Below are positions 2,385 through 33,598 of a stretch of 64,000 nt of DNA, piece after piece. A model generated the notes under the pieces. It made no database searches. It saw only the letters and a list, made by a program, of their open reading frames with translations, and was not told the origin of the DNA. The translations under genes were made by a program, and so were the position numbers. Source of the DNA: Tubulanus polymorphus (Eukaryota; Animalia; Nemertea); NCBI RefSeq assembly GCF_964204645.1, contig NC_134033.1, forward strand, positions 2,500,131 through 2,564,130. The letters are read 5' to 3'. How positions within the stretch are numbered: the first letter of the stretch is position 1; every line of letters starts with the position of its first letter.

Positions 2385-2978
2385 TTAGATAGAAGCGCCA
2401 CCTACCGTGGGAAATGTTGGCAAGCTGGCAAGGTTAAGGTCGAAATATCCGTTGGTCTCGTCGTCTACGAAATCCACCGAACCATAACGAGGCGGCGCCG
2501 AAATAGCCTCGCTTTCATCGAAGGAAGGAGATATCTGTGCAGACGAAAAGAAAACAATATATTCTGTATTTTCGAATCCTTTCTTTGTGTTAATGCCAAT
2601 ATTCTCCGAATTCGGAATGTTTTTCAATGACTTTTGTATACGGTCCCGCATGTATGTTACGGTGGTAAACCGCCATCTTATTTTCACTGTAGATAACGTT
2701 ACGATTAAGCCTGCCTAGAATTTTATTAAAAGTTAAAATGAATTGCTTGAATTGAATTTCCACTATGTATTTAGGATACACAATCCTATACGCCTTGTAA
2801 CGACGGAACCCCGGCCTTTGAAGTGTGTCACCGGCACACGCATTTAAGGAATCTTACCCCGTCCCCCCAACTACTTTGGGACGGTGCCGAATGTATATCT
2901 TCGTTGCTTAAAACATGTCCTCCTCGCGTCGACCCGACCGCCACTTCGCCGGTTGTCATTCGCCGCCGATTCTTCCGA
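2385..2978 (-). CDS. Mucin cytoplasmic-tail exons (2978-2858 and 2534-2385)
   Basis: Translate as RKNRRRMTTGEVAVG...SSWGDG / ISPSFDESEAISAPPRYGSVDFVDDETNGYFDLNLASLPTFPTVGGASI*. Both follow polypyrimidine-AG acceptors and are in phase. Confidence 0.8.
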
Positions 2979-5900
2979 CTAAAATCAAGCGAAAAACATA
3001 AGTACATAATGTACCAAACATAGTAAACCTGTGATTGATGTGTACTACTTTGAGGAGGGTGTGGCCGAGTTGATTTGAGCGATCAAATCTGGGAAGCCAG
3101 TTCGTGGGTTCGACCCCCGTGCGTTATCGTAGCGTCCTCGGGCAAGACACTTATCTTCATTGCCTCTCTCTTCACCCACGAGTAGATGGGTCTGATAGAT
3201 GACTCCTAAGCGCTTAGTAGCTGCACGATGTTACTTTTCCTCATAGAGAGATGACTGATAAATGGTTATCGTTATAGGCTGGGGGTAATCATAAAAGATT
3301 TAATGGAAAGCAATGTTGAACGTTGAATCTCAGTGAAAAGGGCGCTATAGAAATTAAATTACTAAACTACTAAATCACTCAGTTTTCGAACCCATGAGCA
3401 CCACATTCTAATTGGTTTTATATTGGATGATCTTAAATTGGTCTCCGAAGCCATCGCTATGGAAGTAGTTGCTGAATTGCTAAACTCAATCCTCTTTCTT
3501 TTCATTTTCCAAATGTTTATCAACCTCAAAACTAAATTACGCAAAATTTTGATCCAGTAAAATGTAGAAGGAATTCGAAAATGTTTGAGTTCTTTTCGAA
3601 TTTCAAGTTTAAAAGTACGTACAAATTATTGACGCGATATCTACTCACATGTCGTCGATCGAAAAGAGACGCGACTGACGTCTCATACAACACAGTAATA
3701 TTACCGCTATAACGATAAACAATATAAGACACCCGGCCAATGACAGGCCGATGATCACGCCAACTGTCGACGCGCTTCCGAACAGCGTCGCGCTCGTTTC
3801 ACAACGCGTACCGGAATAGCCATCCGAACAACTGGAAAAACGAAATTAGAAATTATCGAATCTAGATATGATGATTGTATGTACTCGGTATAGAATTATC
3901 ATTTCGAAATAATGCGGCGACTAATGCCTGAATTGCTTACACGAATATGGCAAAAAGAAATGCAATAAAGATGAAACAAATCAGTGTTGTATGAAATTGC
4001 CAGAAACCTCCAATAAACGGTGATTCGGCAATTAGGTGAAATGCTTTCTTTTAAGGATAGTCTTCAAATAAAGACAAATGGCACTTTGGAGGTTAACTTG
4101 AAATTTACGAGCTTTCGCTACTAATGTATAGATTAGCTTCATCGGATAAATGACGAAGCTGATATTCACTATAAGTAGCGAAATCTCATACTTTGAATGA
4201 ATCTAATTAACCTTTGAAGTACTATTTGTCTTAACTTTTACTGATTCGAACCCGCGTTAACACTGCTTCTCAACACATCGCCTCACATACCTGCAGACGG
4301 GCGTATTGTTTGTTATCTGGCATATTCCGTTGTTTCCACACTTGAAGTCGAGGCACTTTGACCGACAGAGCGCTCGAAACGTCCCCGGAGTCGTTACGAA
4401 ACAGTTGTAGCCGTACGGACATATATCGATGACGGCACACGGCTGAGCTTGACTCGCCAAACCTGCAACGAATGTTGGTATATTCTTCAATTTTTTAGAT
4501 CCGAGATATTTTCAGCCACACGTTTATTCGATGCGGTAACGTAAAAAACGCCGCATTCAGACATGGCACACTCGGACGCACACAAACAAAAGTGGATAGT
4601 TTTCCCAGATAAAGTCTTTTTTATGTTTAAACGAAAAATGAATTCATGAAAATTTGTGGATTGCCTACAGTAATTTCTGGCAGACGCCGGCACCGCTACC
4701 GATAAAGATTTCAAACTAGGTTAGCTTTATCAATAATATGATTGATATCATTATCAGAAATTTTCTTTTTTTGAGGGGGAGGGGGTGCGGCCGAGACCCG
4801 CCACAATTCCCCTTGGATCTACCCTTACAGTGCCCTAAGACGCGACAGCAACAAAGTCAACGGTCGGATCAACCTTAAAAGGGGGCTGGATCCATGTCAC
4901 AGAATGAAAACCGACCGAATATTGTCCAGGCTGACGTCAAAGCTACAGCATCCTGTATTGTGAACGTACCTAAATTCTGGTTAAGGTTCGCTTGGTAATT
5001 CAAGAAAAAGCCCGAAAGAGTAGCGTTCGGAACACCGAACAAGGGTTTTACGACGTTCACGTAGAACTGAGCGCCGGCGTTGTAAGTCGGGTCGGTCTGG
5101 GATTTCTGAGCTAAAACTTCGGCGTCGTACAAAACGTTGACGTCGACAATCGTGGAGCCGTTTCTGTAAAAAGAATTAGAAATTGAATGTTCGTCGAGGA
5201 AACCCGGAATTCATGTTGTTGCACTTGAACTACCGCTTGAACTTGAAAAATACACAAAATGGGGTACCCGCAGTGTTATTGTGGCAATCGAGGATTCCAC
5301 GTATGGCAGGCGAGGATCCGCCAGGTTCGCTAGTAGATGGTTGGTCGCCCCTGTTCGATTTCTACTACATCGCGATTAAAATTGAATTTCTCTCTCAAAT
5401 AAATTATGAAAACTAAACCCATATCCGAGGAATAAAATGATTGTATATTTTGTGGATGCTGCGATGATATATGGATCCGGGAGTCTAAAATCCAGTTCAA
5501 TGTTCATCGAAAATGAACTAATTTTGACAACGGGCGACCTTCTGCTCGTCACGCCATCTGGTGGCATACCCGGACTTGCGATTTATGTTGACAAAAAGTA
5601 AAAAACAATAACCTTAACGCTCTGTCCGTATTTGAAGCGTTAATAGAAGATAAATGAAAAATGATAACTAAGTTACAGGAAGTCAATCTTCCATCAAAGC
5701 AAGATGCTTTAACTCTTTGTGGGGAACAGGTTGCATAATACGATCTTAAGTATTCGAAAAACGTTCAAAATTTATTAGAAAAAAGCCTCAGACCTCAAAC
5801 CGATGATTCCGACGCCCTTGTAACCTAGGATATTTCGTGAGCTCAGCTTTTGTTCCAACTGAAAATGAGAGAGAAGAAAAGAAACAATCAAAATGAATCA

Positions 5901-8900
5901 TATACTCATCAAGGATGAAACGTGATGTATACTCGACAAGGATTTTAAGAGAAATATAATACTGACCGCTAGTTTGATTTTCCGCACAAACGCTTGATAT
6001 GCATTAGATTTAGGATTGTTGAAAGCTGGAATGAACGTCGTCAGTAGAGTAAGCGATATCTTTATCGGCAGCGTTTTGTTCACTGTAAAAAGCAAACGAT
6101 CAAAAAAAAGCACGATGTGAAAAAATAGTGATGTAAGAAAGCATTGATATTTCTCAAACGAAAAGAAAGATGTACTAACCAAAGTTGGGTATAGGGCTAG
6201 CGAGAGCTGTAGAAACGGTGTACACTTGTGAATGAGTTGTCAGGGATGCTGTTACAGTAGTCGCAGACGCATTATTGCCTGTAGTTCCACTTGTTGGTGG
6301 TACAGTACTGCCTGTTGTTCCACTAGTTGAAGATACAGTACTCCCTGTTGTTCCACTAGTTGGGGAAACAGTACTCCCTGTTGTTCCACTAGTTGGGGAA
6401 ACAGTACTGCCTGTTGTTCCACTAGTTGGGGAAACCGTACTCCCTGTTGTTCCACTAGTTGAGGACATCGTATTGCCTGATGTTCCAGTAGTTGAAGATA
6501 CAGTACTGCCTGCTGTTGCACTAGTTGAGGAAACAGTACTGCCTGTTGTTCCACTAGTTGAAGATACAGTACTGCCTGTTGTTCCACTAGTTGCGGACAC
6601 AGTACTGCCTGTTGTTCCACTAGTTGGTGATACAGTGCTGCCTGTTGTTCCACTAGTTGGTGATATAGTACTGCCTGCTGTTCCACTAGTTGATGACACA
6701 GTACTGCCTGCTGTTGCACTAGTTGAGGAAACAGTACTGCCTGTTGTTCCACTAGTTGAAGATACAGTACTGCCTGTTGTTCCACTAGTTGGTGATATAG
6801 TACTGCCTGCTGTTCCACTAGTTGAGGAAACAGTACTCCCTGTTGTTCCACTAGTTGGGGAAACAGTACTGCCTGTTGTTCCACTAGTTGGGGAAACAGT
6901 ACTCCCTGTTGTTCCACTAGTTGAGGACATCGTACTGCCTGATGTTCCAGTAGTTGAAGATACAGTACTGCCTGCAGTTGCACTAGTTGAGGAAACAGTA
7001 CTGCCTGATGTGCCACTAGTTGAGGACACAGTACTGCCTGTTGTTCCACTAGTTGAAGATACAGTACTGCCTGTTGTTCCACTAGTTGCGGACACAGTAC
7101 TGCCTGTTGTTCCACTAGTTGGTGATATAGTACTGCCTGCTGTTGCACTAGTTGAGGAAACAGTACTGCCTGTTGTTCCACTAGTTGAAGATACAGTACT
7201 GCCTGTTGTTCCACTAGTTGGTGATATAGTACTGCCTGCTGTTCCACTAGTTGAGGATACAATACTGCCTGTTGTTCCACTAGTTGGGGAAACAGTACTC
7301 CCTGTTGTTCCACTAGTTGGGGAAACAGTACTGCCTGTTGTTCCACTAGTTGGGGAAACAGTACTCCCTGTTATTCCACTAGTTGAGGATATCGTACTGC
7401 CTGATGTTCCAGTAGTTGAAGATACAGTACTGCCTGCTGTTGCACTAGTTGAGGAAACAGTACTGCCTGTTGTTCCACTAGTTGAAGATACAGTACTGCC
7501 TGTTGTTCCACTAGTTGCGGACACAGTACTGCCTGTTGTTCCACTAGTTGGTGATATAGTACTGCCTGCTGTTGCACTAGTTGAGGAAACAGTACTGCCT
7601 GTTGTTCCACTAGTTGAAGATACAGTACTGCCTGTTGTTCCACTAGTTGGTGATATAGCACTGCCTGCTGTTCCACTAGTTGAGGAAACAGTACTCCCAG
7701 TTGTTCCACTAGTTGCGGACACAGAACTGCCTGTTGTTCCACTAGTTGAGGATACAGTACTGCCTGTTGTTCCACTAGTTGAGGATACAGTACTGCCTGT
7801 TGTTGCACTAGTTGGGGACACAGTACTGCCTGTTGTTCCACTAGTTGAAGATACTGTACTGCCTGCTGTTCCACTAGTTGCGGACACAGTACTGCCTGTT
7901 GTTCCACTAGTTGGTGATATAGTACTGCCTGCTGTTGCACTAGTTGAGGAAACAGTACTGCCTGTTGTTCCACTAGTTGAAGATACAGTACTGCCTGTTG
8001 TTCCACTAGTTTGTGATATAGTACTGCCTGCTGTTCCACTAGTTGAGGAAAAAGTACTCCCTGTTGTTCCACTAGTTGGGGAAACAGTTCTGCCTGTTGT
8101 TCCACTAGTTGGGGAAACAGTACTCCCTGTTGTTCCACTAGTTGAGGACATCGTACTGCCTGATGTTCCAGTAGTTGAAGATACAGTACTGCCTGCAGTT
8201 GCACTAGTTGAGGAAACAGTACTGCCTGTTGTGCCACTAGTTGAGGACACAGTACTGCCTGTTGTTCCACTAGTTGAAGATACAGTACTGCCTGTTGTTC
8301 CACTAGTTGAAGATACAGTACTGCCTGTTGTTCCACTAGTTGAAGATACAGTACTGCCTGTTGTTCCACTAGTTGCGGACACAGTACTGCCTGTTGTTCC
8401 ACTAGTTGAAGACACAGTACTGCCTACTGTTGCACTAGTTGAGGAAACAGTACTGCCTGTTGTTCCACTAGTTGAGGACACAGTACTGCCTGTTGTTCCA
8501 CTAGTTGAAGATACAGTACTGCCTGTTGTTCCACTAGTTGCGGACACAGTACTGCCTGTTGTTCCACTAGTTGGTGATATAGTACTGCCTGCTGTTGCAC
8601 TAGTTGAGGAAACAGTACTGCCTGTTGTTCCACTAGTTGAAGATACAGTACTGCCTGTTGTTCCACTAGTTGGTGATATAGTACTGCCTGCTGTTCCACT
8701 AGTTGAGGATACAGTACTGCCTGTTGTTCCACTAGTTGGGGAAACAGTACTCCCTGTTGTTCCACTAGTTGGGGAAACAGTACTGCCTGTTGTTCCACTA
8801 GTTGGGGAAACAGTACTCCCTGTTATTCCACTAGTTGAGGACATCGTACTGCCTGATGTTCCAGTAGTTGGAGATACAGTACTGCCTGCTGTTGCACTAG

Positions 8901-11900
8901 TTGAGGAAACAGTACTGCCTGTTGTTCCACTAGTTGAAGATACAGTACTGCCTGTTGTTCCACTAGTTGCGGACACAGTACTGCCTGTTGTTCCACTAGT
9001 TGGTGATATAGTACTGCCTGCTGTTGCACTAGTTGAGGAAACAGTACTGCCTGTTGTTCCACTAGTTGAAGATACAGTACTGCCTGTTGTTCCACTAGTT
9101 GCGGACACAGTACTGCCTGTTGTTCCACTAGTTGAGGATACAGTACTGCCTGTTGTTCCACTAGTTGCGGACACAGAACTGCCTGTTGTTCCACTAGTTG
9201 AGGATACAGTACTGCCTGTTGTTCCACTAGTTGATGATAGAGTACTGCCTGCTGTTGCACTAGTTGAGGACACAGAACTGCCTGTTGTTGCACTAGTTGG
9301 GGACACAGTACTGCCTGTTGTTCCACTAGTTGAAGATACTGTACTGCCTGCTGTTGCACTAGTTGAGGACACAGTACTGCCTGTTGTTCCACTAGTTGAG
9401 GACACAGTACTGCCTGTTGTTCCAGTAGTTGAGGATACAGTACTGCCTATTGTTCCACTCGTTGATGATACAGTACTACCTGATCTTCCACTAGTTGAGG
9501 ACCCAGGACTGCCTGTTGTTCCACTAGTGAATGATACAGTACTGCCTGTTGTTCCACTAGTCGGGGACACAGTACCGCCGGTTGTTCTACTTGTTGGGGA
9601 CACTGTACTCCTTGATGATGTTGCACTAGTTGAGGATACAGGACTGCCTGTTGTTCCACTCGTTGATGATACAGTACTACCTGATCTTCCACTAGTTGAG
9701 GACCCAGGACTGCCTGATGTTCCACTAGTTGAAGACAAAGTACTGCCTGTTGTTCCACTAGTCGGGGACACAGTACCGCCGGTTGTTCTACTTGTTGGGG
9801 ACACTGTACTCCTTGATGATGTTGCACTAGTTGAGGATACAGGACTGCCTGTTGTTCCACTCGTTGATGATACAGTACTACCTGATCTTCCACTAGTTGA
9901 GGACCCAGGACTGCCTGATGTTCCACTAGTTGAGGACAAAGTACTGCCTGTTGTTCCACTAGTTGGGGATACAGTACTGCCTGATGTTCCACTAGTTGAG
10001 GATACAGTACTGCCTGATGTTCCACTAGTTGAGGACACAGTACTGCCGGTTGTTCTACTTGTTGGGGACACTGTACTCCTTGATGATGTTGCACTAGTTG
10101 AGGATACAGGACTGCCCATTGTTCCACTAGATGGAGATACAGTACTGCCTGTTGCTCCAGTAGTTGAGGACACAGTACTGCCTGTTGTTCCACTGGTTGG
10201 TGATACTGTGCTGCCTATTGTTCCACTAGTTGGGGACACAGTACTACCTGTTGATCCAGTAGTTGATGACACAGTACTGCCTGATGTTCCACTGGTTGAT
10301 GATACAGTACTGCCTGTTGCTACACTAGTAGCGGACACAGTACTGCCTGTTGTTCCACTGGTAAGTGATACAGTACTGCCTGTTGTTCCACTAGTTGACG
10401 ACACAGAACTGCCTGTTGTTCCACTGGTTGGTGATACAGTGCTGCCTATTGTTCCACTAGTTGGGGATACAGTACTGCCTGTTGTTCCACTAGTTGACGA
10501 CACAGAACTGCCTGTTGTTCCACTGGTTGGTGATACAGTGCTGCCTATTGTTCCACTAGTTGGGGATACAGTACTGCCTGTTGTTCCACTAGTTGACGAC
10601 ACAGAACTGCCTGTTGTTTCACTGGTTGGTGATACAGTGCTGCCTATTGTTCCTCTAGTTAAGGACACAGTACTACCTGTTGTTCCACTCGTTGAGGATA
10701 CAGTACTGCCTGTAGTTCCACTAGTTGAGGATACAGTACTCCTTGATGTTGCACTAGTTGAGGAGACAGTACTGCCTGTTATTCCACTAGTTGGGGACAC
10801 AGTACTGCCTGTTGTTCCACTAGTAGGGGACACAGTACTGCCTGTGGTTCCACTAGTTGAGGATACAGTACTGCCTGATGTTCCACTAGTTGGGGATACA
10901 GTACTGCCTGTGGTTCCACTAGTTGGGGACACAGTACCGCCGGTTGTACTACTGGTTGGGGACACAGTACTCCCTGATGTTGCACTAGTTGAGGATACAG
11001 TACTGCCTGATGTTCCACTAGTTGAGGAGAAAGTACTGCCTGATGTTCCACTAGTTGGGGAAACAGTACTGCCTGTTGCTCCACTAGTTAAGGACGCAGT
11101 ATTGCCTGTTGTTCCACTATTTGGGAAAACAGTACTGCCTGTTGTTCCACTAGTTGAAGACAAAGTACTGCCTGTTGTTCCACTGGTTGGTGATACAGTG
11201 CTTCCTTTTTTTCCACTAGTTGAGGACACAGAACTGCTGGTTGTTCCACTAGTTGGCGATACAGTGCTGCTTGATGTTCCACTTTTTGAGGAGACAGAAC
11301 CTCCAGTTGTTCCACTAGTGGAAGACACAGTACTGCCTGTTGTTCCACTAGTTGAGGACACAGTACTGCCTGCTCCACTAGTTGATGACACAATACTGCC
11401 TGTAGTTCCACTAGTTGAGGATACAGTACTGCCTGTTGTTCCACTAGGTGAGGACACAGTACTGCCTGTTGTTCCACTGGTTGGTGATACACTGCTGCCG
11501 GTTGTTCCATTGGGTGGTGATAAGGTACTGCCTGTTGTTCCACTAGTTGGGGACACAGAACTGCCGGTTGTTCCACTAGTTGAGGACACAATACTGCCTG
11601 TTGTTCCACTATTTGGGGACACAATACTGCCTGTTGTTCCACTAGTTGATGACACAGTACTGCCTGTTGTTCCACTAGTTGAGGACACAGTACTGCCGGT
11701 TGTTCCACTAGTTGAGGACACAGTACTGCCTGTTGTTCCACTAGTTGATGACACAGTACTCCCTGTTGTTCCATTAGTTGAGGATACAGTACTGCCTGTT
11801 GTTCCACTGGTCGATGATACAGTACTGCCTGTTGTTCCACTATTTGGGGACACAGTACTGCCTGTTGTTCCACTAGTTGAGGATACAGTACTGCCTGTTG

Positions 11901-17900: not shown

Positions 17901-20900
17901 GTACTGCCTGTTGTTCCACTAGTTGGGGACACAGAACTGCCTGTTGTTCCACTAGTTGGGGACACAGTACTGCTTGTTGTTCCACTAGTTGAGGACACAG
18001 AACTGCCTGTTGTTCCACTAGTTTGGGACACAGTACTGCCTGTTGTTCCACTAGTTGGGGACACAGTACTGCCTGATGTTCCACTAGTTGAGGACACAGT
18101 ACTGCCTGATGTTCCACTAGTTGATGATACAGTACTGCCTGATGTTCCACTAGTTGATGATACAGTACTGCCTGTTGTTCCACTAGTTGGGGACACAGTA
18201 CTGCCTATTGTTCCACTTGTTGAGTACACAGTACTGCCTGATGTTCCACTAGTTGATGATACAGTACTGCCTGTTGTTCCACTAGTTGGGGACACAGTAC
18301 TGTCTATTGTTCCACTTGTTGAGTACACAGTACTGCCTGATGTTCCACTAGTTGATGATACAGTACTGCCTGTTGTTGGACTAGTTGGGGATACAGTACT
18401 GCCTGTCATTCCACTAGCTGTGGACCCAGTACTCCCTGATGTTCCACTTGTTGAGGGCACAGTACTGCCTGTTGTTCCACTAGTTGGGGACACAGTACTG
18501 CCTGTTGTTCCACTAGTTGGGGACACAGTAATCCCCGATGTTTCACTAGTAGGAGACACAGTACTGGATGTCATTCCAGAGGTTGTGGACCCAGTACTCC
18601 CTGTTGTTCCACTAGTTGAGGACACAATACTGCCTGATGTCCCACTAGTTGAGGACATAGTACTGCCTGTCGTTCCACTTGTTGTGTACACAGTACTGCC
18701 GCCTGATGTTCCACTAGTTGATGATACAGTACTGCCTGTTGTTCCACTGGTTGAGGACACAGTACTGCCCGTTGTTGCACTAGTTGTGGATACAGTGCTG
18801 CCTGAATTTGCACTAGTTGAGGACACAGTACTGCCTGTTGTTCCACTAGTTGATGATACAGTACTGCCTGATGATCCAGTAGTTGATGATACAGTACTGC
18901 CTGTTGTTCCACTAGTTGGGGACACAGAACTGCCTGTTGTTCCACTAGTTGAGGACACAGAACTGCCTGTTGTTCCACTAGTTGGGGACACAGTACTGCC
19001 TGTTGTTCCACTAGTTGGGGACACAGTACTGCCTGATGTTCCACTAGTTGAGGACACAGTACTGCCTGATGTTCCACTAGTTGAGGACACAGTACTGCCT
19101 GCTGTTCCACTAGTTGATGACACAGTACTGCCTGATGTTCCACTAGTTGATGATACAGTACTGCCTGTTGTTCCACTAGTTGGGGACACAGTACTGCCTA
19201 TTGTTCCACTTGTTGAGTACACAGTACTGCCTGATGTTCCACTAGTTGATGATACAGTACTGCCTGTTGTTGGACTAGTTGGGGACACAGTACTGTCTAT
19301 TGTTCCACTTGTTGAGTACACAGTACTGCCTGATGTTCCACTAGTTGATGATACAGTACTGCCTGTTGTTCCACTAGTTGGGGACACAGTACTGCCTGTT
19401 GTTCCACTTGTTGAGTACACAGTACTGCCTGATGTTCCACTAGTTGATGATACAGTACTGCCTGTTGTTCCACTAGTTGCGGACACAGTACTGCCTGTTG
19501 CTCCACTAGTTGATGATACAGTACTGCCTGTTGTTCCACTAGTTGAGGACACAGTACTGCCTGATGTTCCACTAGTTGAGGACACAGTACTGCCTGTTGT
19601 TCCACTAGTTGATGATACAGTACTGCCTGTCGTTCCACTAGTTGATGACACAGTACTGCCTGTTGTTCCACTTGTTGAGTACACAGTAATCCCTGTAGTT
19701 GGAAACACTGAAGTTGGTGACATGCTTGTGCCTGTTGTACCAGTAGTTGGTGATGCAGAACTGAATGTAGTACTAACACTTGCACCACTGCTCGTCAGTG
19801 TCGAGGAACAAGTCACATTCGTTGAATTTCTATCATGTAGGAAGCACGTGTAGCCATTTGGGCAGACATTAACTGCACTACAGGGGTCAATCCTCATAGC
19901 TACAACAGATCAGTGGTGTACAAAATGATTTTCGCTTTCAGGTTATTTGGATGATTACAAACAGTTTCCTGTTTTAAATGGACAACTTTCGTATGATAAT
20001 CACGGTCACAATTGTAGTGATCTAGACCATCGAATCTAAAATTCAGTTTTGTTCTCAGGTTTTGCAGATGTAAATTACCTTTAATACTTTCAGTTGTGAA
20101 CGTCGTGTTGATTGGCAGGCCATCAATTGCAGTAATATTTGACATCGTCTCTAGTAAAGCTTGCTGAACAAATTGTTCGACACTTAATCCCTGGGTATTT
20201 GCTGCATCCACGAGGGGTCCAAGATTCATCACCATTTCAAAATCCACAGTAACGCTGCCCTGACTATATAAATGTACTTTGTAAACATTGCTACCAGAAT
20301 ATACATACTGTATGTTACAATTGATCAGTTGAATTTGATTATAATCTGATTAGATGTGTTCATAATCACCTGATCTTCCTAATCTTAATCGACGCTAATC
20401 CTGGGACGTTTGCAAACATCTTCATGAGCTACAAGTGTCACAAAAAACCATAACATTGAAATTTGAAGCTGGCTATTAACTAAATAACTATACGCCACTA
20501 ACGATGAGCAAGGGATCAGAACGTATGATTTACCGCTTGATGAATTTTCGATTCAAACGCTTTGTATTCCGGTGAAGATGGATTGTTGTAGTTTGGGTTG
20601 AAAGGAATGGTAAATTTCATGCCAAGTGGGACGGGTACCGATTTATTACCTACAATGTAGTTATAAAAACAAATTAGATATTCAAACAGCCTAGTTAACA
20701 TACTTGCTTTGAGAATAAAGCTGCATTCTGTCAGTAAGTCATATAATTTACGTACGTAAATTAGGCTTAGCAGTAGCAGCCAGTGGTAAAGCAGCAGTAG
20801 TAGGTGCAGCATCCGAGTTCGATGTGTCTATAGCTGTGGAGCTGATAGGTCGGGACAACGTAGATGAATCTGTACGTGAGCTCGTCTTGGTGCTCGCTGA

Positions 20901-23900: not shown

Positions 23901-26900
23901 CATATTATTTACGTACGTAAATTAGGCTTAGCAGTAGCAGCAATAGGTACAGGAGCAGTAGTAAGAGTAGGTGCAGCAGTCGAGGTCGATGTGTCTACGG
24001 TAATGGAGCTGATAGCTCGGGACAATATAGATGAATCCGTTCGTGAGCTCGTCTGGGTGATCGCTGAGGTTGAAGTGTCTACTGTAGAGAAGATGGCGTT
24101 CGAGGACGGCGTAGATAGATCCGTTCGTGCGGTTGTCTGTGCGTTTGTAGGGGTCGAGGTTTCTACCATGGAAGAGCTGACTGTGGATGAAGACGTAGAT
24201 GAGTCCGTTGGAGAACTCATCTCAGTGCTCACCGAAGATGATGTGTCTACCGTGGAGGAGCTGACAGTCGATGAGGGCGAAGGTTTATCCGTTGTTAAGC
24301 TCGAATCAGTGCTCGCAGAGGCCGATGTGTCTACTGTAGAGGAGCTGACAGCTGGTGACGACGTAGACGAATCCGTTGATGAACTCGACACGGTGCTCGC
24401 CGAGGTTGATAAGTCTACCGTAGAGGATCTGACATTTGAGGACGACGTCGACGAATCCGTTTGTGAGCTCGTCTCGGTGCTCGCCGAGGTTGTTACAGTA
24501 GTTGAGGATACAGCACTGCCTGTTGTTCCACTTGTTGGGGATACAGTACTGCCTGTTGTTGCACTAGTTGAGGATACAGTACTGCCTGAGGTTCCACTAG
24601 TAGAGGACCCAGCACTCCCTGATGTAGCACTAGTTGAAGAAACTATACTGCCTGTCATTACACTTGTTGGGGACAGAGTACTGCCTGTTTTTCCAGTAGT
24701 TGAGGACACAGTACTGCCAATCGTTCCACTAGTTGGGGACCCAGTACTGCCTGATTTTCCTGGTGAGGACACAGTACTGCCTGTTGTTCCACTACTAGTT
24801 GAGGCCCCAGTACTGCCTGTCGTTACACCAGTTGAGGACACAGTACTGCCTGATGTTCCGATAGTTGTGGACCCAGTACTCCCTGGTGTAGCACTAGTTG
24901 AGGACACTGTACTGCCTGTTGTACCACCAGTTGTGGATCCACTACTGCCTGATGTTCCACTAGTTGGAAACACAGTACTGCCTGATGTTCCACTTGTTGA
25001 GGAAACAGTACTGCCTGTTGTTCCACTAGTTGCGGACACAGTACTGCCTGTTGTTCCACCAGTTGTGGATCCACTACTGCCTGATGTTCCAGTAGTTGGA
25101 AATAGAGTACTGCCTGTTGTTCCACTAGTTGAGGATACAGTACTGCCTGTTGTTCCACTAGATGAGGATACAGTACTGCCTGATGTTCCAGTAGTTGGAA
25201 ATAGAGTACCGCCTGTTGTTCCACTAGTTGAGGATACAGTACTGCCTGTTGTTCCACTAGATGAGGATACAGTACTGCCTGTTGTTCCACTAGTTGAAGA
25301 CACAGTACTGCCTGATGTTCCACTAGTTGAGGACACAGTACTGCCTGTGGTTCCACTAGTTGAGGACACAGTACTGCCTGTTGTTCCACCAATTGTGGAT
25401 CCACTACTGCCTGATGTTCCACTAGTTGGAAATAGAGTACTGCCTGTTGTTCCACTAGTTGAAGATACAGTACTCCATGTTGTTCCACTAGTTGGAAATA
25501 CAGTACTGCCTGTTGTTCCACTAGTTGAAGACACAGTACTGCCTGTTGTTAGACTAGTTGGGGACACAGTACTGCCTGTTGTTCCACCAGTTGTGGATCC
25601 ACTACTGCCTGATGTTCCACTAGTTGGAAATAGAGTACTGCCTGTTGTTCCACTAGTTGAAGACACAGTACTGCCTGTTGTTAGATTAGTTGGGGACACA
25701 GTACTGCCTGTTGTTCCACCAGTTGTGGATCCACTACTGCCTGTTGTTCCACTAGTTGGAAATACAGTACTGCCTGTGGTTCCACTAGTTGAGGACACAG
25801 TACTGCCTGTTGTTCCACCAATTGTGGATCCACTACTGCCTGATGTTCCACTAGTTGGAAATAGAGTACTGCCTGTTGTTCCACTAGTTGAAGATACAGT
25901 ACTGCCTGTTGTTCCACTTGTTGAGGACACAGTACTGCCTGTTGTTCCACTAGTTGAAGATACATTACTGCCTGTTGTTCCACTAGTTGAGGACACAGTA
26001 CTGCCTGTTGTTCCACCAGTTGTGGATCCACTACTGCCTGATGTTCCACTAGTTGGGGATACAGTACTGCCTGATGTTCCACTAGTTGAGGACACAGTAC
26101 TGCCTGTTGTTCCACCAGTTGTGGATCCACTACTGCCTGTTGCTCCAGTAGTTGAGGACACAGTGCTGCCTGTTGTTCCACTAGTTGGGGACACAGTACT
26201 GCCTGATGTTCCACTTGTTGGGAATACAGTAGTGACTGCTGTTCCACTATTTGAGGGCAGAGTACTCCCTGCTGTTCCAATAGTCGATGATACAGTACTC
26301 CCTGATATTCCACTCGTTGAGGATACAGAACTGTCTGTCGTTCCACCAGTTAAGAACACAGAACTACCTGTCGTTCCACTAGACTGGAACACAGTACTCC
26401 CTGATGTCCCACTAGTTGAGGACACAGTACTGCCTGTCATTCCACTAGCTATGGACCCAGTACTGCCTGTTGTTCCACTAGACAGGGACACTGTACTGCC
26501 TGTCATTCCACTAGTTTGGGACACAGTACTGCCTGATGTTCCACTAGTTGAGGACACTGTACTGCCTGTCATCCCACTAGTTTGGGACACAGTACTGCCT
26601 GATGTTCCACTAGTTGAGGACACCATACTGCCTGTTGTTCCACTAGTTGAGGACCCAGTACTGCCTATCGTTCCACTAGTTTGGGACACAGTACTGCCTG
26701 ATGTTCCACTAGTTGAGGACACCGTACTGCCTGTCGTTCCACTAGTTTGGGACACAGTCATCACTGTAGTTGAAAATAATGAGGTTGGTGCCATGCTTGT
26801 GCCTGTTGTACCAGTGGTTGGGGATGCAGAACTGTATGTTGTACTAATACTTGCACTACTGCTCGTCGGTGTCGAGGAACATGTCACATTCGTGGAATTT

Positions 26901-29900
26901 TTATCATGTAGAAAGCATGTGTAACCACTTGGGCAGACATTTACTACACTACAAGGGTCAACTCTCATCGCTAAAACAGAAGACCAGTATTGTACACAAT
27001 TATTATGGCTTTCAGGTTATTTTGATGAATATAACTAGTTTCCTCTATTGAAATGAACTATTTTCGTAAGATAACCACTGTCACAATTAAAATGATTCGG
27101 ACCATCGAATCTTGAATCCATTTTTTTCCGATTTTCAGATGTAAAATACCTTTAATACTTTCAGTTGTGAACGTCGTGTTGATTGGCAGGCCGTCAATTG
27201 CAGTAATATTTGACATCGTCTCTAGTAAAGCTTGCTGAACAAGTTGTTCGATGCTGAAACCTTGGGTATTTGCTGCATCCACGAGGGGTCCAAGATTCAT
27301 CACCATTTCAAAATCCACAGTAACGCTGCCCTGACTATATAAATGTACTTTATAAACATTGCTATCAGAATATATATACAGTATGTAACAGTTGATTAAT
27401 TGAATTCGATTATCATCTGATTGGATGTGTTCATAATCACCTGATCTTCCTAATCTTTAACGAGGCTAATCCTGGGACATTTGCGAACATCTTCATCAGC
27501 TACAAGTGTCACAAAAACAACAGCATTAAAGCAGGCTGTAAATGAAATAACGATGCGCCAGTAATCGTGAGAATGTGATGAAAACGTAAGATTTACCGCT
27601 TGATGAATTTTCGATTCAAAGGCTTTGTATTCCGGTGAAGATTGATTGTTGTAATTTTGGTTGAAAGGAATGGTAAATTTCATAGCAAGTGGGACGGGTA
27701 CCGATTTATTACCTACAATATAGATATATGCGTAAGAAATTGAATAGTCAGACAAGTTAAAACATGTGTATTGAGAATAAAGCTGTATTCTTTCAATAAG
27801 ACATATTATTTACGTACGTAAATTGGGCTTAGCAGTAGCAGCAATAGGTACAGGAGCAGTAGTAAGAGTAGGTGCAGCAGTCGAGGTCGATATGTCTACG
27901 GTAATGGAGCTGATAGCTCGGGACCATATAGATGAATCCGTTCGTGAGCTCGTCTGGGTGATCGCTGAGGTTGAAGTGTCTACTGTAGAGAAGATGGCGT
28001 TCGAGGACGGCGTAGATAGATCCGTTCGTGCGGTTGTCTGTGCGTTTGTAGGGGTCGAGGTTTCTACCATGGAAGAGCTGACTGTGGATGAAGACGTAGA
28101 TGAGTCCGTTGGAGAACTCATCTCAGTGCTCACCGAAGATGATGTGTCTACCGTGGAGGAGCTGACAGTCGATGAGGGCGAAGGTTTATCCGTTGTTAAG
28201 CTCGAATCAGTGCTCGCAGAGGCCGATGTGTCTACTGTAGAGGAGCTGACAGCTGGTGACGACGTAGACGAATCCGTTGATGAACTCGACACGGTGCTCG
28301 CCGAGGTTGATAAGTCTACCGTAGAGGATCTGACATTTGAGGACGACGTCGACGAATCCGTTTGTGAGCTCGTCTCGGTGCTCGCCGAGGTTGTTACAGT
28401 AGTTGAGGATACAGCACTGCCTGTTGTTCCACTTGTTGGGGATACAGTACTGCCTGTTGTTGCACTAGTTGAGGATACAGTACTGCCTGAGGTTCCACTA
28501 GTAGAGGACCCAGCACTCCCTGATGTAGCACTAGTTGAAGAAACTATACTGCCTGTCATTACACTTGTTGGGGACAGAGTACTGCCTGTTTTTCCAGTAG
28601 TTGGGGACACAGTACTGCCAATCGTTCCACTAGTTGGGGACCCAGTACTGCCTGATTTTCCTGTTGAGGACACAGTACTGCCTGTTGTCCCACTAGTTGA
28701 GGCCCCAGTACTGCCTGTCGTTACACCAGTTGAGGACACAGTACTGCCTGATGTTCCGATAGTTGTGGACCCAGTACTCCCTGGTGTAGCACTAGTTGAG
28801 GACACTGTACTGCCTGTTGTTCCACCAGTTGTGGATCCACTACTGCCTGATGTTCCACTAGTTGGAAACACAGTACTGCCTGATGTTCCACTAGTTGAGG
28901 AAACAGTACTGCCTGTTGTTCCACTAGTTGCGGACACAGTACTGCCTGTTGTTCCACCAGTTGTGGATCCACTACTGCCTGATGTTCCAGTAGTTGGAAA
29001 TAGAGTACTGCCTGTTGTTCCACTAGTTGAGGATACAGTACTGCCTGTTGTTCCACTAGTTGAAGATACAGTACTGCCTGATGTTCCACTAGTTGAGGAC
29101 ACAGTACTGCCTGATGTTCCACTAGTTGGAAATACAGTACTGCCTGTGGTTCCACTAGTTGAGGACACAGTACTGCCTGTTGTTCCACCAATTGTGGATC
29201 CACTACTGCCTGATGTTCCACTAGTTGGAAATAGAGTACTGCCTGTTGTTCCACTAGTTGAAGATACAGTGCTGCCTGTTGTTCCACTAGTTGAGGACAC
29301 AGTACTGCCCGTTGTTAGACTAGTTGGGGACACAGTACTGCCTGTTGTTCCACCAGTTGTGGATCCACTACTGCCTGTTGTTCCACTAGTTGGAAATACA
29401 GTACTGCCTGTTGTTCCACTAGTTGAAGACACAGTACTGCCTGTTGTTAGACTAGTTGGGGACACAGTACTGCCTGTTGTTCCACCAGTTGTGGATCCAC
29501 TACTGCCTGTTGTTCCACTAGTTGGAAATACAGTACTGCCTGATGTTCCACTAGTTGAGGACACAGTACTGCCTGTTGTTCCACCAGTTGTGGATCCACT
29601 ACTGCCTGTTGTTCCACTAGTTGGAAATACAGTACTGCCTGATGTTCCACTAGTTGAGGACACAGTACTGCCTGATGTTCCACTAGTTGGAAATAGAGTA
29701 CTGCCTGTTGTTCCACTAGTTGAAGATACAGTACTGCCTGTTGTTCCACTTGTTGAGGACACAGTACTGCCTGTTGTTCCACCAGTTGTGGATCCACTAC
29801 TGCCTGATGTTCCACTAGTTGGGGATACAGTACTGCCTGATGTTCCACTAGTTGAGGACACAGTACTGCCTGCTGTTCCACTAGTTGAAGATACAGTACT

Positions 29901-32900
29901 GCCTGTTGTTCCACTAGTTGAAGATACAGTACTGCCTGTTGTTCCACTAGTTGAAGATACAGTACTGCCTGTTGTTACACTAGTTGAGGACACAGTACTG
30001 CCTGTTGTTCCACTAGTTGGGGACACAGTACTGCCTGTTGTTCCACTAGGTGAGGACATAGTAGTGCCTGTTGTTCCACTAGTTGGAAATACAGTACTGC
30101 CTGTTGTTCCACTAGGTGAGGACACAGTACTGCCTGTTGTTCCACTAGTTGGAAATACAGTACTGCCTGTTGTTCCACTAGGTGAGGACATAGTAGTGCC
30201 TGTTGCTCCAGTAGTTGATGACACAGTACTGCCGGTTGTTCCACTGGGTGAGGACACAGTACTGCCTGTTGTTCCACTTGTTGATGACACAGTACTGCCT
30301 GTTGTTCCACTAGTTGGGAATACAGTACTGCCTGTTGTTCCACCAGTTGTCGATGCACTACTGCCTGATGTTCCACTAGTTGGGGATACAGTACTGCCTG
30401 ATGTTCCACTAGTTGAGGACACAGTACTGCCTGATGTTCCACTAGTTGAGGACACAGTACTGCCTGTTGTTCCACTAGTTGGAAATACAGTACTGCCTGT
30501 TGTTCCACTAGGTGAGGACATAGTAGTGCCTGTTGCTCCAGTAGTTGAGGACACAGTACTGCCTGTTGTTCCACTAGTTGGGGACACAGTACTGCCTGTT
30601 GTTCCACTAGTTGATGACACAGTACTGCCGGTTGTTCCACTGGGTGAGGACACAGTACTGCCTGTTGTTCCACTAGTTGATGACACAGTACTGCCTGTTG
30701 TTCCACTAGTTGGGAATACAGTACTGCCTGTTGTTCCACCAGTTGTCGATGCACTACTGCCTGATATTCCACTAGTTGAGGACAGAGTAGAGGAGCTGAC
30801 AGTTGACGACGACAAAGACAAATTCCAATCCGATGGTGAGCTTGTCTCGGTATTCCCCGAAGTTGACGTGTCCACATTAGTGGAACTGACAGTTGACGAA
30901 AATGTTGATGAATCCGCTGGTGAGGTCGTCTCGGTGCTCGCCGAGGTTGACGTGTCCACGTTAGTGGAACTAACAGTTGACGAAAATGTTGATAAATCCG
31001 TCGATGAACTCGTTTCGGTGCTCGTCAAGGTTGATGTATCTACGGCAGTGGAGCTAACAGTCGGGAACGACGTAGATGAATATGTTGACGAGATCGTCTC
31101 GGTGCTTGCTGAAGTTGATGAGTCTACCGTAGAGGAGCTGACCGTCGACGAAAATGTTGATGAATCCGTTGATGAACTCGTCTCGGTGCTCGCCGAGGTT
31201 GACGTGTCTACCGTAGAAGAGCTGACAGTCGAGGAAGACGTAGACGAATCCGTTGGTGAACTCGTCTTGGTGCTCGCCGAGGTTGACGTGTCTACCGTAG
31301 AAGAGCTGACAGTCGAGGACGGCGAAGACAAATTCCAAACCGATGGTGAGCTTGTCTCGGTACTCCCCGAAGTTGACGTATCCACGTTAGTGGAACTGAC
31401 AGTTGATGAAAATGTTGATGAATCCGTTGGTGAACTCGTCTCGGTGCTCGCCGAAGTTGATGATGCAGTACCGGCTGCTGTACTTGTCTCAGTAGATATT
31501 GGTGAATGAGATGAAGTTGTTGATTCAGTTGTTTTCAATGTAGTTGTTGTGGTCGTTACTACTTTTCGTACGCAATTTATTGCATGAGTGTCGTTGTGTA
31601 TAACGCAATCGTATCCCGCTGGACATGTTTTCTTCTTTGCACACGGATCTGCCTTTTTTACCGCCGCTGAAAACATAAGACAACAAAATTGGTTCTTTGT
31701 GAGGGGTCGCAATGTCGCCAATTGTGTATTTTCATAACAGGTCAAAGCAGAACACGACTCGCACAGTAAACCCCTCATGTCATCATATGGAATTATGGAT
31801 GAACCTCAAGGTTGATTCGGAAATAACTAGATTTACATAGGATAGAAAGTTTTTTCCAAACCAGGGGGGGGGGACCGGTTGCATAGTCAAGACCAACTTG
31901 ACTCTATAGCCGATCTAACAACTTAAGATCAATCTTAAGACTTAAGACCTTTTTGACTTAAGTCATGACTGTGCAACTGGCCCCCGGACTTTTGGTTTCC
32001 TTGAGTTGATATTAGGTAAGTCAGTTGGCTGCAGAGATATTGATCCTACTTCTAATGGGGTGGATTTTGTACTTTCATTGCCATTTTGAATGATCTTTCT
32101 CTAACTCACTTTTAATTGACTTGGAAATACTGTTATTCAAACTCTTCATATTGACTGTCGTGCCGTTCAAACTAATATTCTTCGCAGTTTCAAGAATCAG
32201 TTGTTGAAACTTTTGCAAATCCGCCATGTTCACGTTGAAATTGAATTCGACCGCCACGCTTCCATTTCTGAAACGTACGAAGATATATACGCCACTTATT
32301 ACTCGGGAATTCCCGATCGGGTCGTACGAGGCTTGGACGTGGGCAGAGGAAGGTCCCGGGAGTACCACCTATATGTAAGCCTTCCAAAATTCCCTTAGAA
32401 GATTTAAAATCCTTTTACACTGAAGACAACTCTTACACTGACTAACTCTGCTCAATGCGATGGTGCTGCGCAGATGGTGCACAGGGAATTGCACAATTTT
32501 ATTTAAGATGATGCTAGCCCGAAAAACAAACAAAAACAATTCTTTAAACATGTCCTGTGTCTTTGTTTGTCGTTGAAATGTTATGCCGACTGTGCTTTAG
32601 GCTTTAGATTTGATGTTGAAATTTAACCAATGTTGTTCAAATCTTTCCATATTTTCGGCCAAAATTGTAACCTCATTAAATAGAGTAAGCTCAAACCTGT
32701 ATCCACCCAAATCCAGTTGATTACATCCGGGTAAATGGCGACATACTTCGTCCATCTGAAAAATATGGAATTTCTCTTCAAAATCAAATGGTGCCGACTT
32801 CAAAAGCTCGACAAACCTTAATGAAAATCTCTTTTTAGGATTAAAAAGAAATTCTAGATCCTCGGTTTCCCAAGATTAACCTTATTGGATTGTTCATTAA

Positions 32901-33598
32901 ACCTCCCGACGAGATCATGGCATTTTAAGTGTTGCCCGCACACTGTAAGCAGCCAGCAGGACGGAACCTGCTTACCGAATCAACTGCTGTTTTTAAAGTA
33001 GTTATACCTTCGCTTGTAAATAGCTGGAGACGTCTCGATATATCTGTGTTTGATTGTTCGCCAGATCGGCTATAAAAGGTGTGTCGAATGTCATCGTGAT
33101 TTTGTTTGATATCGACACATTCGCTGGAATGATATATTTAGAAACAAAATGAACGAATTTAACGTCATTAGCCTTTAAAATGATACCTTGTTTCTCACTT
33201 CTGCTGAGCTTTAGAGTAGACCTGGGGGCCGCCTATCTACTCTGTACATAAGTTTTTTTAAAATCATGATCAAACTAACAATAAAAAACCCGGCAATTGT
33301 TGAAATAAACTGATCACAAAATATATTGCAGTTTACAAAAGTGACCCGGCCGACTATGGGAAACAAGGTATCAACTTTTTCAGCTTTAGGCGAAATATTT
33401 CCACTGAAAAAAGTCGTAAGTAAATGTCATAATGAACGGAAAGAATTTCTAAATTTATGATTCGACCAACTTTTCGGTTTTTGTACCTGGGATTATTTCT
33501 GTTATCACGGTGGTATTCGTCTGAGATTTGATGCGTAGAATATGAAGTAATCCGAATAGTCCGGTGACTAGAATACTGTACGGCTGACTTGCGGCCAT
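2385..33598 (-). CDS. Giant type-I transmembrane mucin with 6 SEA domains, 5 PTS domains, 4-Cys modules and an EGF domain (about 8,280 aa, 28 coding exons)
   Basis: Exons 5'->3': 33598-33487, 33123-33008, 32755-32697, 32267-32110, 31666-27818, 27712-27597, 27499-27441, 27334-27150, 26970-23917, 23813-23698, 23600-23542, 23435-23251, 23068-20756, 20649-20534, 20428-20370, 20263-20079, 19899-16729, 16544-16429, 16255-16197, 16120-15936, 15749-6180, 6082-5967, 5858-5794, 5163-4970, 4462-4291, 3831-3649, 2978-2858, 2534-2385. All introns are GT-AG and phases are consistent. The sum is 24,843 nt = 8,281 codons including TAA. Confidence 0.88.
3054..3365 (+). mobile_element. tRNA-derived SINE with a CORE-like central domain (intronic)
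   Basis: A box TGGCCGAGTTG (3062-3072) and B box GGTTCGACCCC (3107-3117). Then GTCCTCGGGCAAGACACTT...TGCCTC...GTAGATGGG, which resembles the CORE-SINE domain. The 3' end GCGCTATAGAAAT resembles LINE-derived tails. Confidence 0.7.
3649..3831 (-). CDS. Mucin exon: EGF C-terminal half plus transmembrane helix
   Basis: CSDGYSGTRCE...VGVIIGLSLAGCLILFIVIAVILLCCMRRQSR: a hydrophobic span followed by CC and basic residues. 183 nt, phase 2-2. Not in the ORF track. Confidence 0.9.
4291..4462 (-). CDS. Mucin exon: 4-Cys module plus EGF N-terminal part
   Basis: PCAVIDICPYGYNCFVTTPGTFRALC-RSK-CLDFKCGNNGICQITNNTPVC. It joins the next exon to give the canonical EGF ending CxCxxGYxGxxC. Confidence 0.9.
4970..6082 (-). 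CDS. SEA domain 6 (membrane-proximal), exons of 116/65/194 nt
   Basis: NKTLPIKISLTLLTTFIPAFNNPKSNAYQAFVRKIKLA-LEQKLSSRNILGYKGVGIIGLR-NGSTIVDVNVLY. Shows the SEA pattern and an LRNG/STIV motif. Confidence 0.85.
6180..15749 (-). CDS. PTS exon 5 (9,570 nt, 3,190 codons): 4-Cys module plus about 280 11-aa repeats
   Basis: Begins LQIDPCSAVGLCPNGFTCIVLNGNTTKVTC, continues as (TSGTTGSTVS[S/P])n, and ends PIPNF. Acceptor TAG at 15752-15750, donor GTTAGT at 6179. Phase 1-1. Confidence 0.9.
6280..15560. repeat. 33-bp coding tandem repeat, largest block; also at about 16870-19690, 21460-22860, 24490-26760 and 28390-30785
   Basis: Plus-strand consensus CAGTACTGCCTGTTGTTCCACTAGTTGAGGA(C/T)A. Roughly 550 units in total, estimated as length/33. 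Confidence 0.97.
15936..16544 (-). CDS. SEA domain 5, exons of 116/59/185 nt
   Basis: NATLSVPFSISFNVLFNTNYNNQSSQDYVTFVSKINQA-LTALFSNIPGFSALKIKNIR-QGSVIVDFGISANL...TTESIK. Confidence 0.88.
16729..19899 (-). CDS. PTS exon 4 (3,171 nt)
   Basis: MRIDPCSAVNVCPNGYTCFLHDRNSTNVTC followed by repeats. Donor GTAAGT at 16728. Phase 1-1. Confidence 0.88.
20079..20649 (-). CDS. SEA domain 4, exons of 116/59/185 nt
   Basis: NKSVPVPLGMKFTIPFNPNYNNPSSPEYKAFESKIHQA-LMKMFANVPGLASIKIRKIS-QGSVTVDFEMVMNL. Confidence 0.88.
20756..23068 (-). CDS. PTS exon 3 (2,313 nt)
   Basis: MRVDPCSVVNVCPSGYTCFLHDKNSTNVTC, then 11-aa repeats, then degenerate 28-aa acidic repeats. Phase 1-1. Confidence 0.87.
23251..23813 (-). 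CDS. SEA domain 3, exons of 116/59/185 nt
   Basis: Near-identical to SEA2 and very similar to SEA4. Carries ISQG/SVTV. Confidence 0.88.
23917..26970 (-). CDS. PTS exon 2 (3,054 nt)
   Basis: The N-terminal part matches PTS3 and the C-terminal part matches PTS1. Phase 1-1. Confidence 0.87.
27150..27712 (-). CDS. SEA domain 2, exons of 116/59/185 nt
   Basis: Copy of SEA3 including introns, offset about 3,900 bp. Carries ISQG/SVTV. Confidence 0.88.
27818..31666 (-). CDS. PTS exon 1 (3,849 nt)
   Basis: AVKKADPCAKKKTCPAGYDCVIHNDTHAINC, then 28-aa repeats, 11-aa repeats and more 28-aa repeats. Acceptor CAG at 31669-31667. Confidence 0.87.
30790..31460. repeat. 84-bp (28-aa) diverged coding repeat, STSASTETSSPTDSSTSSSTVSSSTVDT-like
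   Basis: CTCGCCGAGGTTGACGTG recurs at 31189 and 31273. Related degenerate units end PTS1-3. Confidence 0.8.
31871..31984. mobile_element. Short MITE, family B (about 115 bp, about 19-bp TIR)
   Basis: GGGACCGGTTGCATAGTCA ... TGACTGTGCAACTGGCCCC. Related copies at 46795-47070, 49108-49229, 56140-56215 and 56885-57000. Confidence 0.7.
32110..33123 (-). CDS. SEA domain 1 (N-terminal), exons of 116/59/158 nt
   Basis: NVSISNKITMTFDTPFIADLANNQTQIYRDVSSYLQAK-MDEVCRHLPGCNQLDLGGYR-NGSVAVEFNFNV. Same intron phases as the other SEA domains and the same 116/59 first two exons as SEA2-5. Confidence 0.85.
33170..33390. mobile_element. MITE family C (PIF/Harbinger-like), diverged copy
   Basis: TGATACCTTGTTTC...GAAACAAGGTATCA inverted ends. 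Colinear with 44909-45126. Partial reverse-orientation copies at 36932-37075 and 41720-41825. Confidence 0.7.
33487..33598 (-). CDS. Mucin first coding exon with signal peptide
   Basis: CAAAATGG start context; MAASQPYSILVTGLFGLLHILRIKSQTNTTVITEIIP. The phase-1 donor fits SEA1. An acceptor 30 nt upstream (33631-33629) implies a further 5' exon. Confidence 0.75.

Follow-up and report, generated by a model that had tools for sequence, protein, structure and literature searches.

In this study, we have analyzed a window of 64,000 nucleotides (nt) from the genome of the nemertean Tubulanus polymorphus (contig NC_134033.1, positions 2,500,131 to 2,564,130) and have rebuilt a 28-exon gene that runs along its minus strand from position 33598 to position 2385; except where another contig is named, all positions are those of this window. 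The coding sequence (CDS) of 24,843 nt starts with an ATG at 33598, ends with a stop codon at 2387-2385, accounts for ~80% of the 31.2-kb gene span, and translates into 8,280 amino acids (aa). The predicted product begins with a signal peptide, which is followed by five successive units, each consisting of a SEA domain, a four-cysteine knob, and a Ser/Thr/Gly-rich domain, and then by a sixth SEA domain, another four-cysteine knob, an EGF-like domain, a transmembrane (TM) segment, and a cytoplasmic tail. It is very likely that this is one gene with this architecture; it is also likely, although less so, that its product is a membrane-tethered mucin (type I; ~8,280 residues) that was built by module duplication and that some or all of its SEA domains cut themselves. 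The original prediction, which was made from the letters of this DNA without database searches, had proposed a protein of about 8,280 aa with the same layout between positions 2385 and 33598; our rebuilt CDS reproduced the length, the domain order, and both ends.

The minus strand was called from the GC and AT skews and the longest open reading frames (ORFs). Twenty-six exons were placed by hand and checked by script, and two tail exons (2978-2858 and 2534-2385) were added in a separate candidate search; the regions between the giant exons were read base by base, and the small exons that were not obvious were chosen from enumerated candidates. The script check showed that all introns are of the GT..AG type, that the phases agree across each intron, and that there are no stop codons inside exons. 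Long ORFs are also present on the plus strand over the repeats, and these were rejected as antisense by-products of a stop-free 33-nt repeat. Across the gene there is one signal peptide, one TM segment, and one stop codon, and the exon phases are continuous. Separate genes for each module were ruled out because no module has a signal-peptide start, TM segment, or stop codon of its own. These features are explained most simply by a single gene.

Each module consists of four exons: exon a of 116 nt (phase 1 to 0), a middle exon of 59 nt (phase 0 to 2), exon b of ~158 to 185 nt (phase 2 to 1), and a giant exon of 2.3 to 9.6 kb (phase 1 to 1). Exon b opens just ahead of the Gly-Ser (G-S) site, and the giant exon starts with a four-Cys motif whose spacing resembles that of an N-terminal half-EGF domain and then continues into the Ser/Thr/Gly-rich repeat. 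All six SEA units have an a exon of 116 nt and run through phases 1-0-2-1; SEA6 follows the same three-exon plan, but its middle exon has 65 nt.

The exons, all of which are on the minus strand, are as follows. Exon 1 (33487-33598; 37 codons plus 1 base, phase 0 to 1) carries the ATG and a signal-peptide-like N terminus, which was judged by eye from a hydrophobic core of ~15 residues after the Met. SEA1 is encoded by exon a at 33008-33123 (116 nt, phase 1 to 0), a middle exon at 32697-32755 (59 nt, phase 0 to 2), which had the best acceptor tract among the listed candidates and the size of the SEA2 to SEA5 middle exons, and exon b at 32110-32267 (Gly, 32263-32261; Ser, 32260-32258). The first giant exon, at 27818-31666, encodes knob 1 and mucin stretch 1, with 1,251 aa after the fourth Cys. 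Module 2 comprises SEA2 exon a (27597-27712), a 59-nt middle exon (27441-27499), exon b (27150-27334; Gly, 27330-27328; Ser, 27327-27325), and the exon for knob 2 and mucin stretch 2 (23917-26970; 987 aa). In the exon model, SEA3 follows with exon a at 23698-23813, a middle exon at 23542-23600, and exon b at 23251-23435 (Gly, 23431-23429; Ser, 23428-23426); knob 3 and mucin stretch 3 lie at 20756-23068 (740 aa). The corresponding SEA4 exons were modeled at 20534-20649, 20370-20428, and 20079-20263 (Gly, 20259-20257; Ser, 20256-20254), with knob 4 and mucin stretch 4 at 16729-19899 (1,026 aa), and those of SEA5 at 16429-16544, 16197-16255, and 15936-16120 (Gly, 16116-16114; Ser, 16113-16111). 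Knob 5 and mucin stretch 5 occupy the largest exon of the gene (6180-15749; 9,570 nt), in which the mucin stretch accounts for 3,159 aa. SEA6 consists of exon a at 5967-6082, a middle exon at 5794-5858 (65 nt, 21 codons), which was the best candidate and had the strongest acceptor, and exon b at 4970-5163 (Gly, 5159-5157; Ser, 5156-5154).

The Cys spacing in the sequence identifies knob 6 and the first four Cys residues of the EGF-like domain in a single exon, at 4291-4462. The next exon (3649-3831) encodes the end of the EGF-like domain (C-x8-C), the TM segment (~3767-3687), and basic stop-transfer residues and gave weak TM-type Pfam matches. The EGF-like pattern beside the TM segment, C-x4-C-x5-C-x8-C-x-C-x8-C, is thus split by an intron over 4462-4291 and 3831-3649; when these two exons were searched separately against Pfam EGF, there was no match. 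The TM stretch, again judged by eye, has ~27 hydrophobic residues with basic residues after it and is succeeded by an acidic tail. The putative cytoplasmic tail exon at 2858-2978 (121 nt, phase 2 to 0) had the best acceptor tract among the phase-bridging candidates; its competitors are two longer candidates with the same donor and a fourth candidate inside the last exon. The last exon (2385-2534), which lies within a 109-codon open frame, encodes the acidic tail and the stop codon.

Alternative acceptors were seen at two places. In SEA2 to SEA4, exon b could be lengthened by 10 residues, which resemble a beta strand, through use of an in-frame acceptor that lies 30 nt further upstream. These 30 nt (27364-27335, 23465-23436, and 20293-20264) are as well conserved as the exons, with 97% identity between SEA2 and SEA4, compared with 78 to 87% for the remaining introns, and might be either a second, alternative 3' splice site or a region around the branch point that is under constraint. 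SEA5 has no nearby acceptor of this kind because there is no AG in the last ~20 nt of its intron. In SEA1, the 59-nt middle exon has a competitor in a phase-0 acceptor at 32368, which could be used in its place but has poorer splice signals. The G/S site is unaffected by either ambiguity.

The five mucin stretches, of 740 to 3,159 residues each, total 7,163 aa and are built mainly from repeat units of 33 nt (11 aa) and 84 nt (28 aa). Ser and Thr together make up 60 to 66% of the residues, Gly 11 to 17%, and Pro 3 to 4%. The original prediction had called these regions PTS domains; the five Ser/Thr-rich mucin stretches were all found, but the term is a loose label because they are Ser/Thr/Gly rich and Pro poor. 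They are presumably O-glycosylated.

A SEA domain has an alpha/beta fold of ~110 to 120 residues with G-S at the turn between beta2 and beta3, and the six domains in our exon model are 110 to 124 residues long. The SEA searches were run exon by exon, and their results refer to separate exons rather than to joined domains. A Pfam search had been suggested together with the original prediction. The a exons of SEA2 (25.6 bits; E = 1.4e-5), SEA3 (25.7 bits; E = 1.3e-5), and SEA4 (22.6 bits; E = 1.2e-4) matched the Pfam SEA model (PF01390) at positions 8 to 50, the first 40% of a model whose curated whole-domain cutoff is 26.4 bits, but the a exons of SEA1, SEA5, and SEA6 gave no direct Pfam SEA match. 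A genome-wide SEA scan recovered the same three a exons. The SEA3 b region matched model positions 47 to 99 (13.5 bits; E = 0.08) solely when the query also took in the in-frame part of the intron at its 3' end; the Pfam pieces from the SEA2 to SEA4 a exons and the SEA3 b region are colinear, and their bit scores would sum to a value above the cutoff.

The remaining units were connected to these by similarity within the gene. SEA5 shares 53% identity with SEA2 in exon a and 62% in exon b. When leave-one-out profiles of the a exons were searched against all open frames in the window, the top nonmember matches were SEA6a (E = 1e-8; E = 1e-6 with a profile of SEA2, SEA4, and SEA5 only) and SEA1a (E = 0.004); SEA1b gave a weak profile match (E = 0.07). 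A P-G pair occupies the same position of the middle exon in SEA1 to SEA5, and I-L-G is found there in SEA6. In the ESM Atlas, the top two feature matches of SEA2b were SEA clusters (0.82 and 0.81), which are below the counting level and serve as a lead only, and a search with SEA6b returned nothing. The sole match of the a profile in the PDB sequence search was the SEA domain of TMPRSS11D, which was not significant (E = 0.73); the b profile gave chance matches only, and neither the single SEA2a exon nor the exon with the four-Cys knob and EGF-like half gave anything significant. Modeling of the SEA2 a, middle, and b exons as three separate chains (score, 0.14; mark, 0.34), in which one chain had fewer than 30 residues and alignments were unused, provided no evidence either way. 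From sequence comparison, we regard the identity of SEA2 to SEA5 as SEA domains as secure, that of SEA6 as likely, and that of SEA1, which has weak similarity and shares the exon plan, as probable. At this level, the six units are tied together by the exon plan, the position of P-G or I-L-G, the G-S-x-x-V motif near the beginning of exon b, and the subsequent four-Cys motif.

SEA cleavage is an N-to-O acyl shift at the Ser residue. In membrane mucins, the SEA domain is regarded as a precut mechanical breaking point, with a joint that is believed to part under force; Pelaseyed and coworkers are said to have proposed this role for the mucin SEA domain in 2013 (as cited in bioRxiv 10.1101/2022.09.20.508530). 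The six cleavage-type motifs that had been listed in the original prediction were all read identically in our exon model: Y-R-N-G/S-V-A-V in SEA1, I-S-Q-G/S-V-T-V in SEA2, SEA3, and SEA4, I-R-Q-G/S-V-I-V in SEA5, and L-R-N-G/S-T-I-V in SEA6. In every motif, the residue ahead of N or Q is encoded by a codon that is split by an intron. G-S-x-x-V is present in six of the six SEA domains. Just nine columns are invariant in an alignment of the six b exons, where the most distant pair shares 25% identity, and G, S, and V(+4) account for three of these columns. Motif-bearing SEA domains are known to cut themselves during folding, after which the two halves stay associated; in IMPG1 and IMPG2, the SEA-2 domains with G-S-x-x-V are cut and the SEA-1 domains, which have no motif, are predicted to be uncut (PMC9478142). 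The citing statement in PMC1552070 credits Macao et al. (2006) with the same self-cutting behavior.

The internal SEA copies have been maintained by selection. Between SEA2 and SEA4, identity is 94.8% in exon a, 89.8% in the middle exon, and 96.2% in exon b, compared with 78 to 87% in the introns; among SEA2 to SEA5, the ratio of nonsynonymous to synonymous divergence (dN/dS) is 0.09 to 0.24, with dS near the intron divergence. These values indicate that the internal copies have been under purifying selection since each duplication, which is not expected of untranslated sequence.

A whole-gene self-BLAST was swamped by the 33-nt repeat and was replaced by module-versus-module comparisons, in which neighboring modules shared collinear blocks of 2.5 to 3.3 kb. 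Modules 2 and 3 are 99% identical in their exons and 96% identical in their introns. SEA2 and SEA3 are near-identical; SEA4 is slightly older and SEA5 far older, and divergence is greatest for SEA1 and SEA6. This order, together with the collinear blocks, suggests that unequal crossing-over of a phase-symmetrical unit enlarged the array from within. The outer SEA1 and SEA6 domains would be old and the inner SEA2 to SEA5 domains later duplicates; therefore, the ancestral layout was probably SEA, mucin, SEA, EGF, and TM. We propose that the gene grew via tandem duplication of the four-exon module, in which the three small exons (116, 59, and ~185 nt) would make up one SEA domain, and that copies of this module, which runs from phase 1 to phase 1, could be gained, lost, or skipped with the reading frame intact. 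Profile searches found no further copies of this SEA subtype elsewhere in the 268-Mb genome.

A small gene with a one-module plan lies upstream of the giant mucin gene on the same, minus strand (49141-46419). It has a signal-peptide-like start and a short Thr/Pro-rich stretch within 48503-49141, an exon like SEA exon a at 48294-48434, which matches the a-exon profile with E = 0.012, a further exon that carries a G-S-I-L-V site within 47255-47608, and a four-Cys and EGF-like region at 46534-46737 and 46419-46658; a Pfam search of this gene gave nothing significant. Just downstream of the stop codon of the giant gene there is a tandem array with a 41/82/168-nt period (1836-2299). Two further tandem-repeat blocks, at 57333-57968 and 58029-58466, have long open frames on both strands and are probably satellite-like and unrelated to the mucin. 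A contig from a public sequencing run (X1) covers the SEA5 region (15650-16800) and differs from the window by 14 single-base changes in 1,151 bases (1.2%) and one gap, in exons and introns alike; it is probably the other haplotype or comes from another individual.

Elsewhere in the same genome (contig C8, ~8.874 to 8.888 Mb, plus strand), a gene for a type II transmembrane serine protease also alternates SEA domains and mucin stretches. Its order is a SEA domain of the F-R-N-G-S-V-I-A type, a Thr/Gln/Pro-rich repeat of ~1,600 aa, an LDLa domain, a second SEA domain (P-G-S-I-V-A), a repeat, another LDLa domain, and a trypsin-like domain. It resembles the giant mucin gene in that G-S-bearing SEA domains alternate with mucin-like stretches; however, it belongs to another family, has another topology with a trypsin-like end, and has only two SEA domains, which in genome profile searches were not close to those of the giant mucin.

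Several observations weigh against the reading of this locus as one gene for a membrane mucin with self-cutting SEA domains. The two public runs that were found, both from one study, consist of contigs that contain the introns and show no splice joints; they therefore look like DNA and are silent on splicing. The proline content of the mucin stretches is low for a classical PTS domain. The exact b exons of all six SEA units gave no Pfam SEA match, SEA6b had no independent profile, Pfam, or Atlas match, the SEA1 and SEA6 middle exons likewise had no independent support, and the b-exon profile had 0 matches at an E value of 0.001 in a library of 1.84 billion representative proteins, a search in which short exon queries have little power. 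With regard to cleavage, the strict rule for self-cutting is G-S-x-x-V with x being V or I (PMC9478142). Only SEA5 has V or I at both x positions; the other five motifs deviate at one of them, with A or T, and in SEA1 and SEA6 an N-G-S sequon, with its Asn two residues before the Ser, overlaps the scissile site.

These deviations and sequons would be explained if the gene were real but all or most of its SEA domains did not cut themselves and instead served as folded, N-glycosylated spacers or carbohydrate-associated knobs between the mucin stretches. Uncut SEA domains are common, examples being SEA-1 of the IMPG proteins (PMC9478142) and the SEA domain of ADGRG4 (bioRxiv 10.1101/2022.09.20.508530), and gel-forming mucins already interleave PTS regions with a small folded domain (PMC1552070). 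CysD in these mucins and the mostly uncut SEA repeats of MUC16 would be precedents for such spacers. However, none of the six domains deviates at G, S, or V(+4), although their identity otherwise falls to 25%, and this would be difficult to account for unless the motif itself had been under selection. Furthermore, enteropeptidase and matriptase cut at G/S-V-I-A, and the x positions therefore tolerate variation. We consider it rather unlikely that cutting is absent from most or all of the domains. Judged from the motif and by analogy with characterized SEA domains, at least one of the six would on balance be expected to cut; that all six do so, giving seven polypeptides joined by six noncovalent SEA joints in series, is improbable.

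A different concern is whether the full six-SEA protein is the main product of the gene. Because each module runs from phase 1 to phase 1, any run of modules could be skipped in frame, which would give shorter isoforms with fewer SEA and mucin units; internal promoters or ends could do likewise, the copy number may also differ between individuals, and the near-identity of modules 2 and 3 is a sign of very recent unequal crossing-over. However, the purifying selection on the internal SEA copies implies that they are translated in some product, and no signal peptide, TM segment, or stop codon was seen within the array. We accept a shorter main product as a possibility, albeit a doubtful one. Long, near-identical repeats also assemble poorly, and modules 2 and 3 are so alike that their number might have been inflated by the assembly, for example, if two haplotypes or collapsed repeats had been placed in tandem. 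This is highly improbable: the introns of modules 2 and 3 differ by ~4%, compared with 1.2% for the probable other haplotype in run X1, mucin stretches 2 and 3 differ in both length (987 versus 740 aa) and content, and SEA4 and SEA5 are clearly distinct copies.

On our preferred reading, a single gene for a tethered mucin with some or all SEA domains self-cutting, these domains would be cut at G/S during folding, by analogy with MUC1-type SEA domains, and their halves would be held together noncovalently. Several joints that respond to force would then lie in series along the extracellular filament, and a pull on its distal part would break one of them, shedding everything beyond the break and leaving a stump that keeps part of the glycocalyx. 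Since SEA joints in series bear equal load, a break removes all that is distal to it, and shedding would be graded by the position of the break; the earlier suggestion that the filament sheds segment by segment does not follow from this arrangement.

We know of no mucin that carries such a SEA joint other than singly and next to the membrane; with six motif-bearing SEA domains spaced over ~7,000 glycosylated residues, the worm protein would be evidence that one molecule can use the joint repeatedly. If all six were cut, a single membrane mucin would have several mechanical fuses along its length, such that flow, abrasion, or an attached microbe could shed a graded length of glycocalyx while the cell kept a glycosylated stump. 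The protein would then provide a test bed for the idea that SEA domains act as breaking points, and material from a membrane mucin could in this way enter the mucus of the worm. The natural motif variants (VAV, VTV, VIV, and TIV), with and without an N-glycan sequon, could be used to test the requirements for cutting. In addition, the gene shows how a giant mucin can be constructed, by duplication of a phase-symmetrical SEA and mucin module whose small folded domain is kept by selection, and it adds a spiralian SEA-type membrane mucin.

The presence of many SEA domains in a membrane mucin is reminiscent of MUC16 (CA125). In MUC16, SEA repeats of ~156 residues, separated by short linkers, are lined up in close tandem behind the main mucin domain, and most of them have no cutting motif. 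In contrast, the SEA domains of the worm protein are spaced by 740 to 3,159 mucin residues, all six have G-S-x-x-V, and there is no close tandem SEA array. Likewise, MUC2, MUC5AC, and MUC5B have long glycosylated stretches that are interrupted by a small folded domain (PMC1552070); however, the small domain in their case is CysD, which is not self-cutting, and they are secreted polymers with VWD domains and no membrane anchor.

The worm protein has the layout of a SEA-type transmembrane mucin, namely, a signal peptide and a TM segment (both judged by eye), Ser/Thr-rich repeats, a juxtamembrane SEA domain, and a tail. In this it resembles MUC3, MUC12, MUC17, and MUC13, which have a signal peptide, a huge Ser/Thr-rich tandem repeat, a juxtamembrane SEA domain of the G/S type beside EGF-like sequence, a TM segment, and a short tail. 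Unlike the worm protein, with its five mucin domains and six SEA domains, these mucins have one of each; in MUC3, MUC12, and MUC17, EGF domains flank the SEA domain, whereas in the worm a half-EGF motif follows each SEA domain, and the worm repeats are Pro poor and Gly rich, unlike those of MUC3, MUC12, MUC13, and MUC17. Orthology to MUC3, MUC12, MUC13, or MUC17 is not supported; these four are regarded as late vertebrate inventions (PMC1552070). The short exon queries, which have low power, detected no sequence similarity to named vertebrate mucins or to IMPG2. In the literature that we read, SEA-type membrane mucins have been treated mainly as a vertebrate matter (PMC1552070), with one MUC1-like case known from a sea anemone (PMC9080433).

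The closest published layout is that of IMPG2 (SPACRCAN), which has a SEA domain, a mucin-like region, a second SEA domain, one or more EGF-like domains, a single TM segment, and a cytoplasmic tail (PMC9478142). IMPG1 and IMPG2 share the order SEA-1, mucin domain, and SEA-2, to which IMPG2 adds the EGF and TM elements, and only SEA-2 is cut (PMC9478142). The membrane-proximal SEA domain of IMPG2 has G-S-x-x-V and cuts itself (PMC9478142), and the whole arrangement fits the ancestor that we infer for the worm gene (SEA1, mucin, SEA6, EGF, and TM). However, IMPG2 has two SEA domains in ~1,240 residues, compared with six in 8,280 residues in the worm, its distal SEA-1 domain lacks the motif and is predicted to be uncut, and it has no four-Cys knob after each SEA domain. 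The original prediction, in suggesting that this layout might have no characterized counterpart, had omitted IMPG1 and IMPG2. No membrane protein with six SEA domains and five mucin domains was described in the literature that we searched on multiple, repeated, or alternating SEA domains, and to that extent the suggestion stands; domain-architecture databases may hold unnamed invertebrate models. The novelty of the worm protein is tempered accordingly: it is an expanded SEA-type membrane mucin on an IMPG2-like plan.

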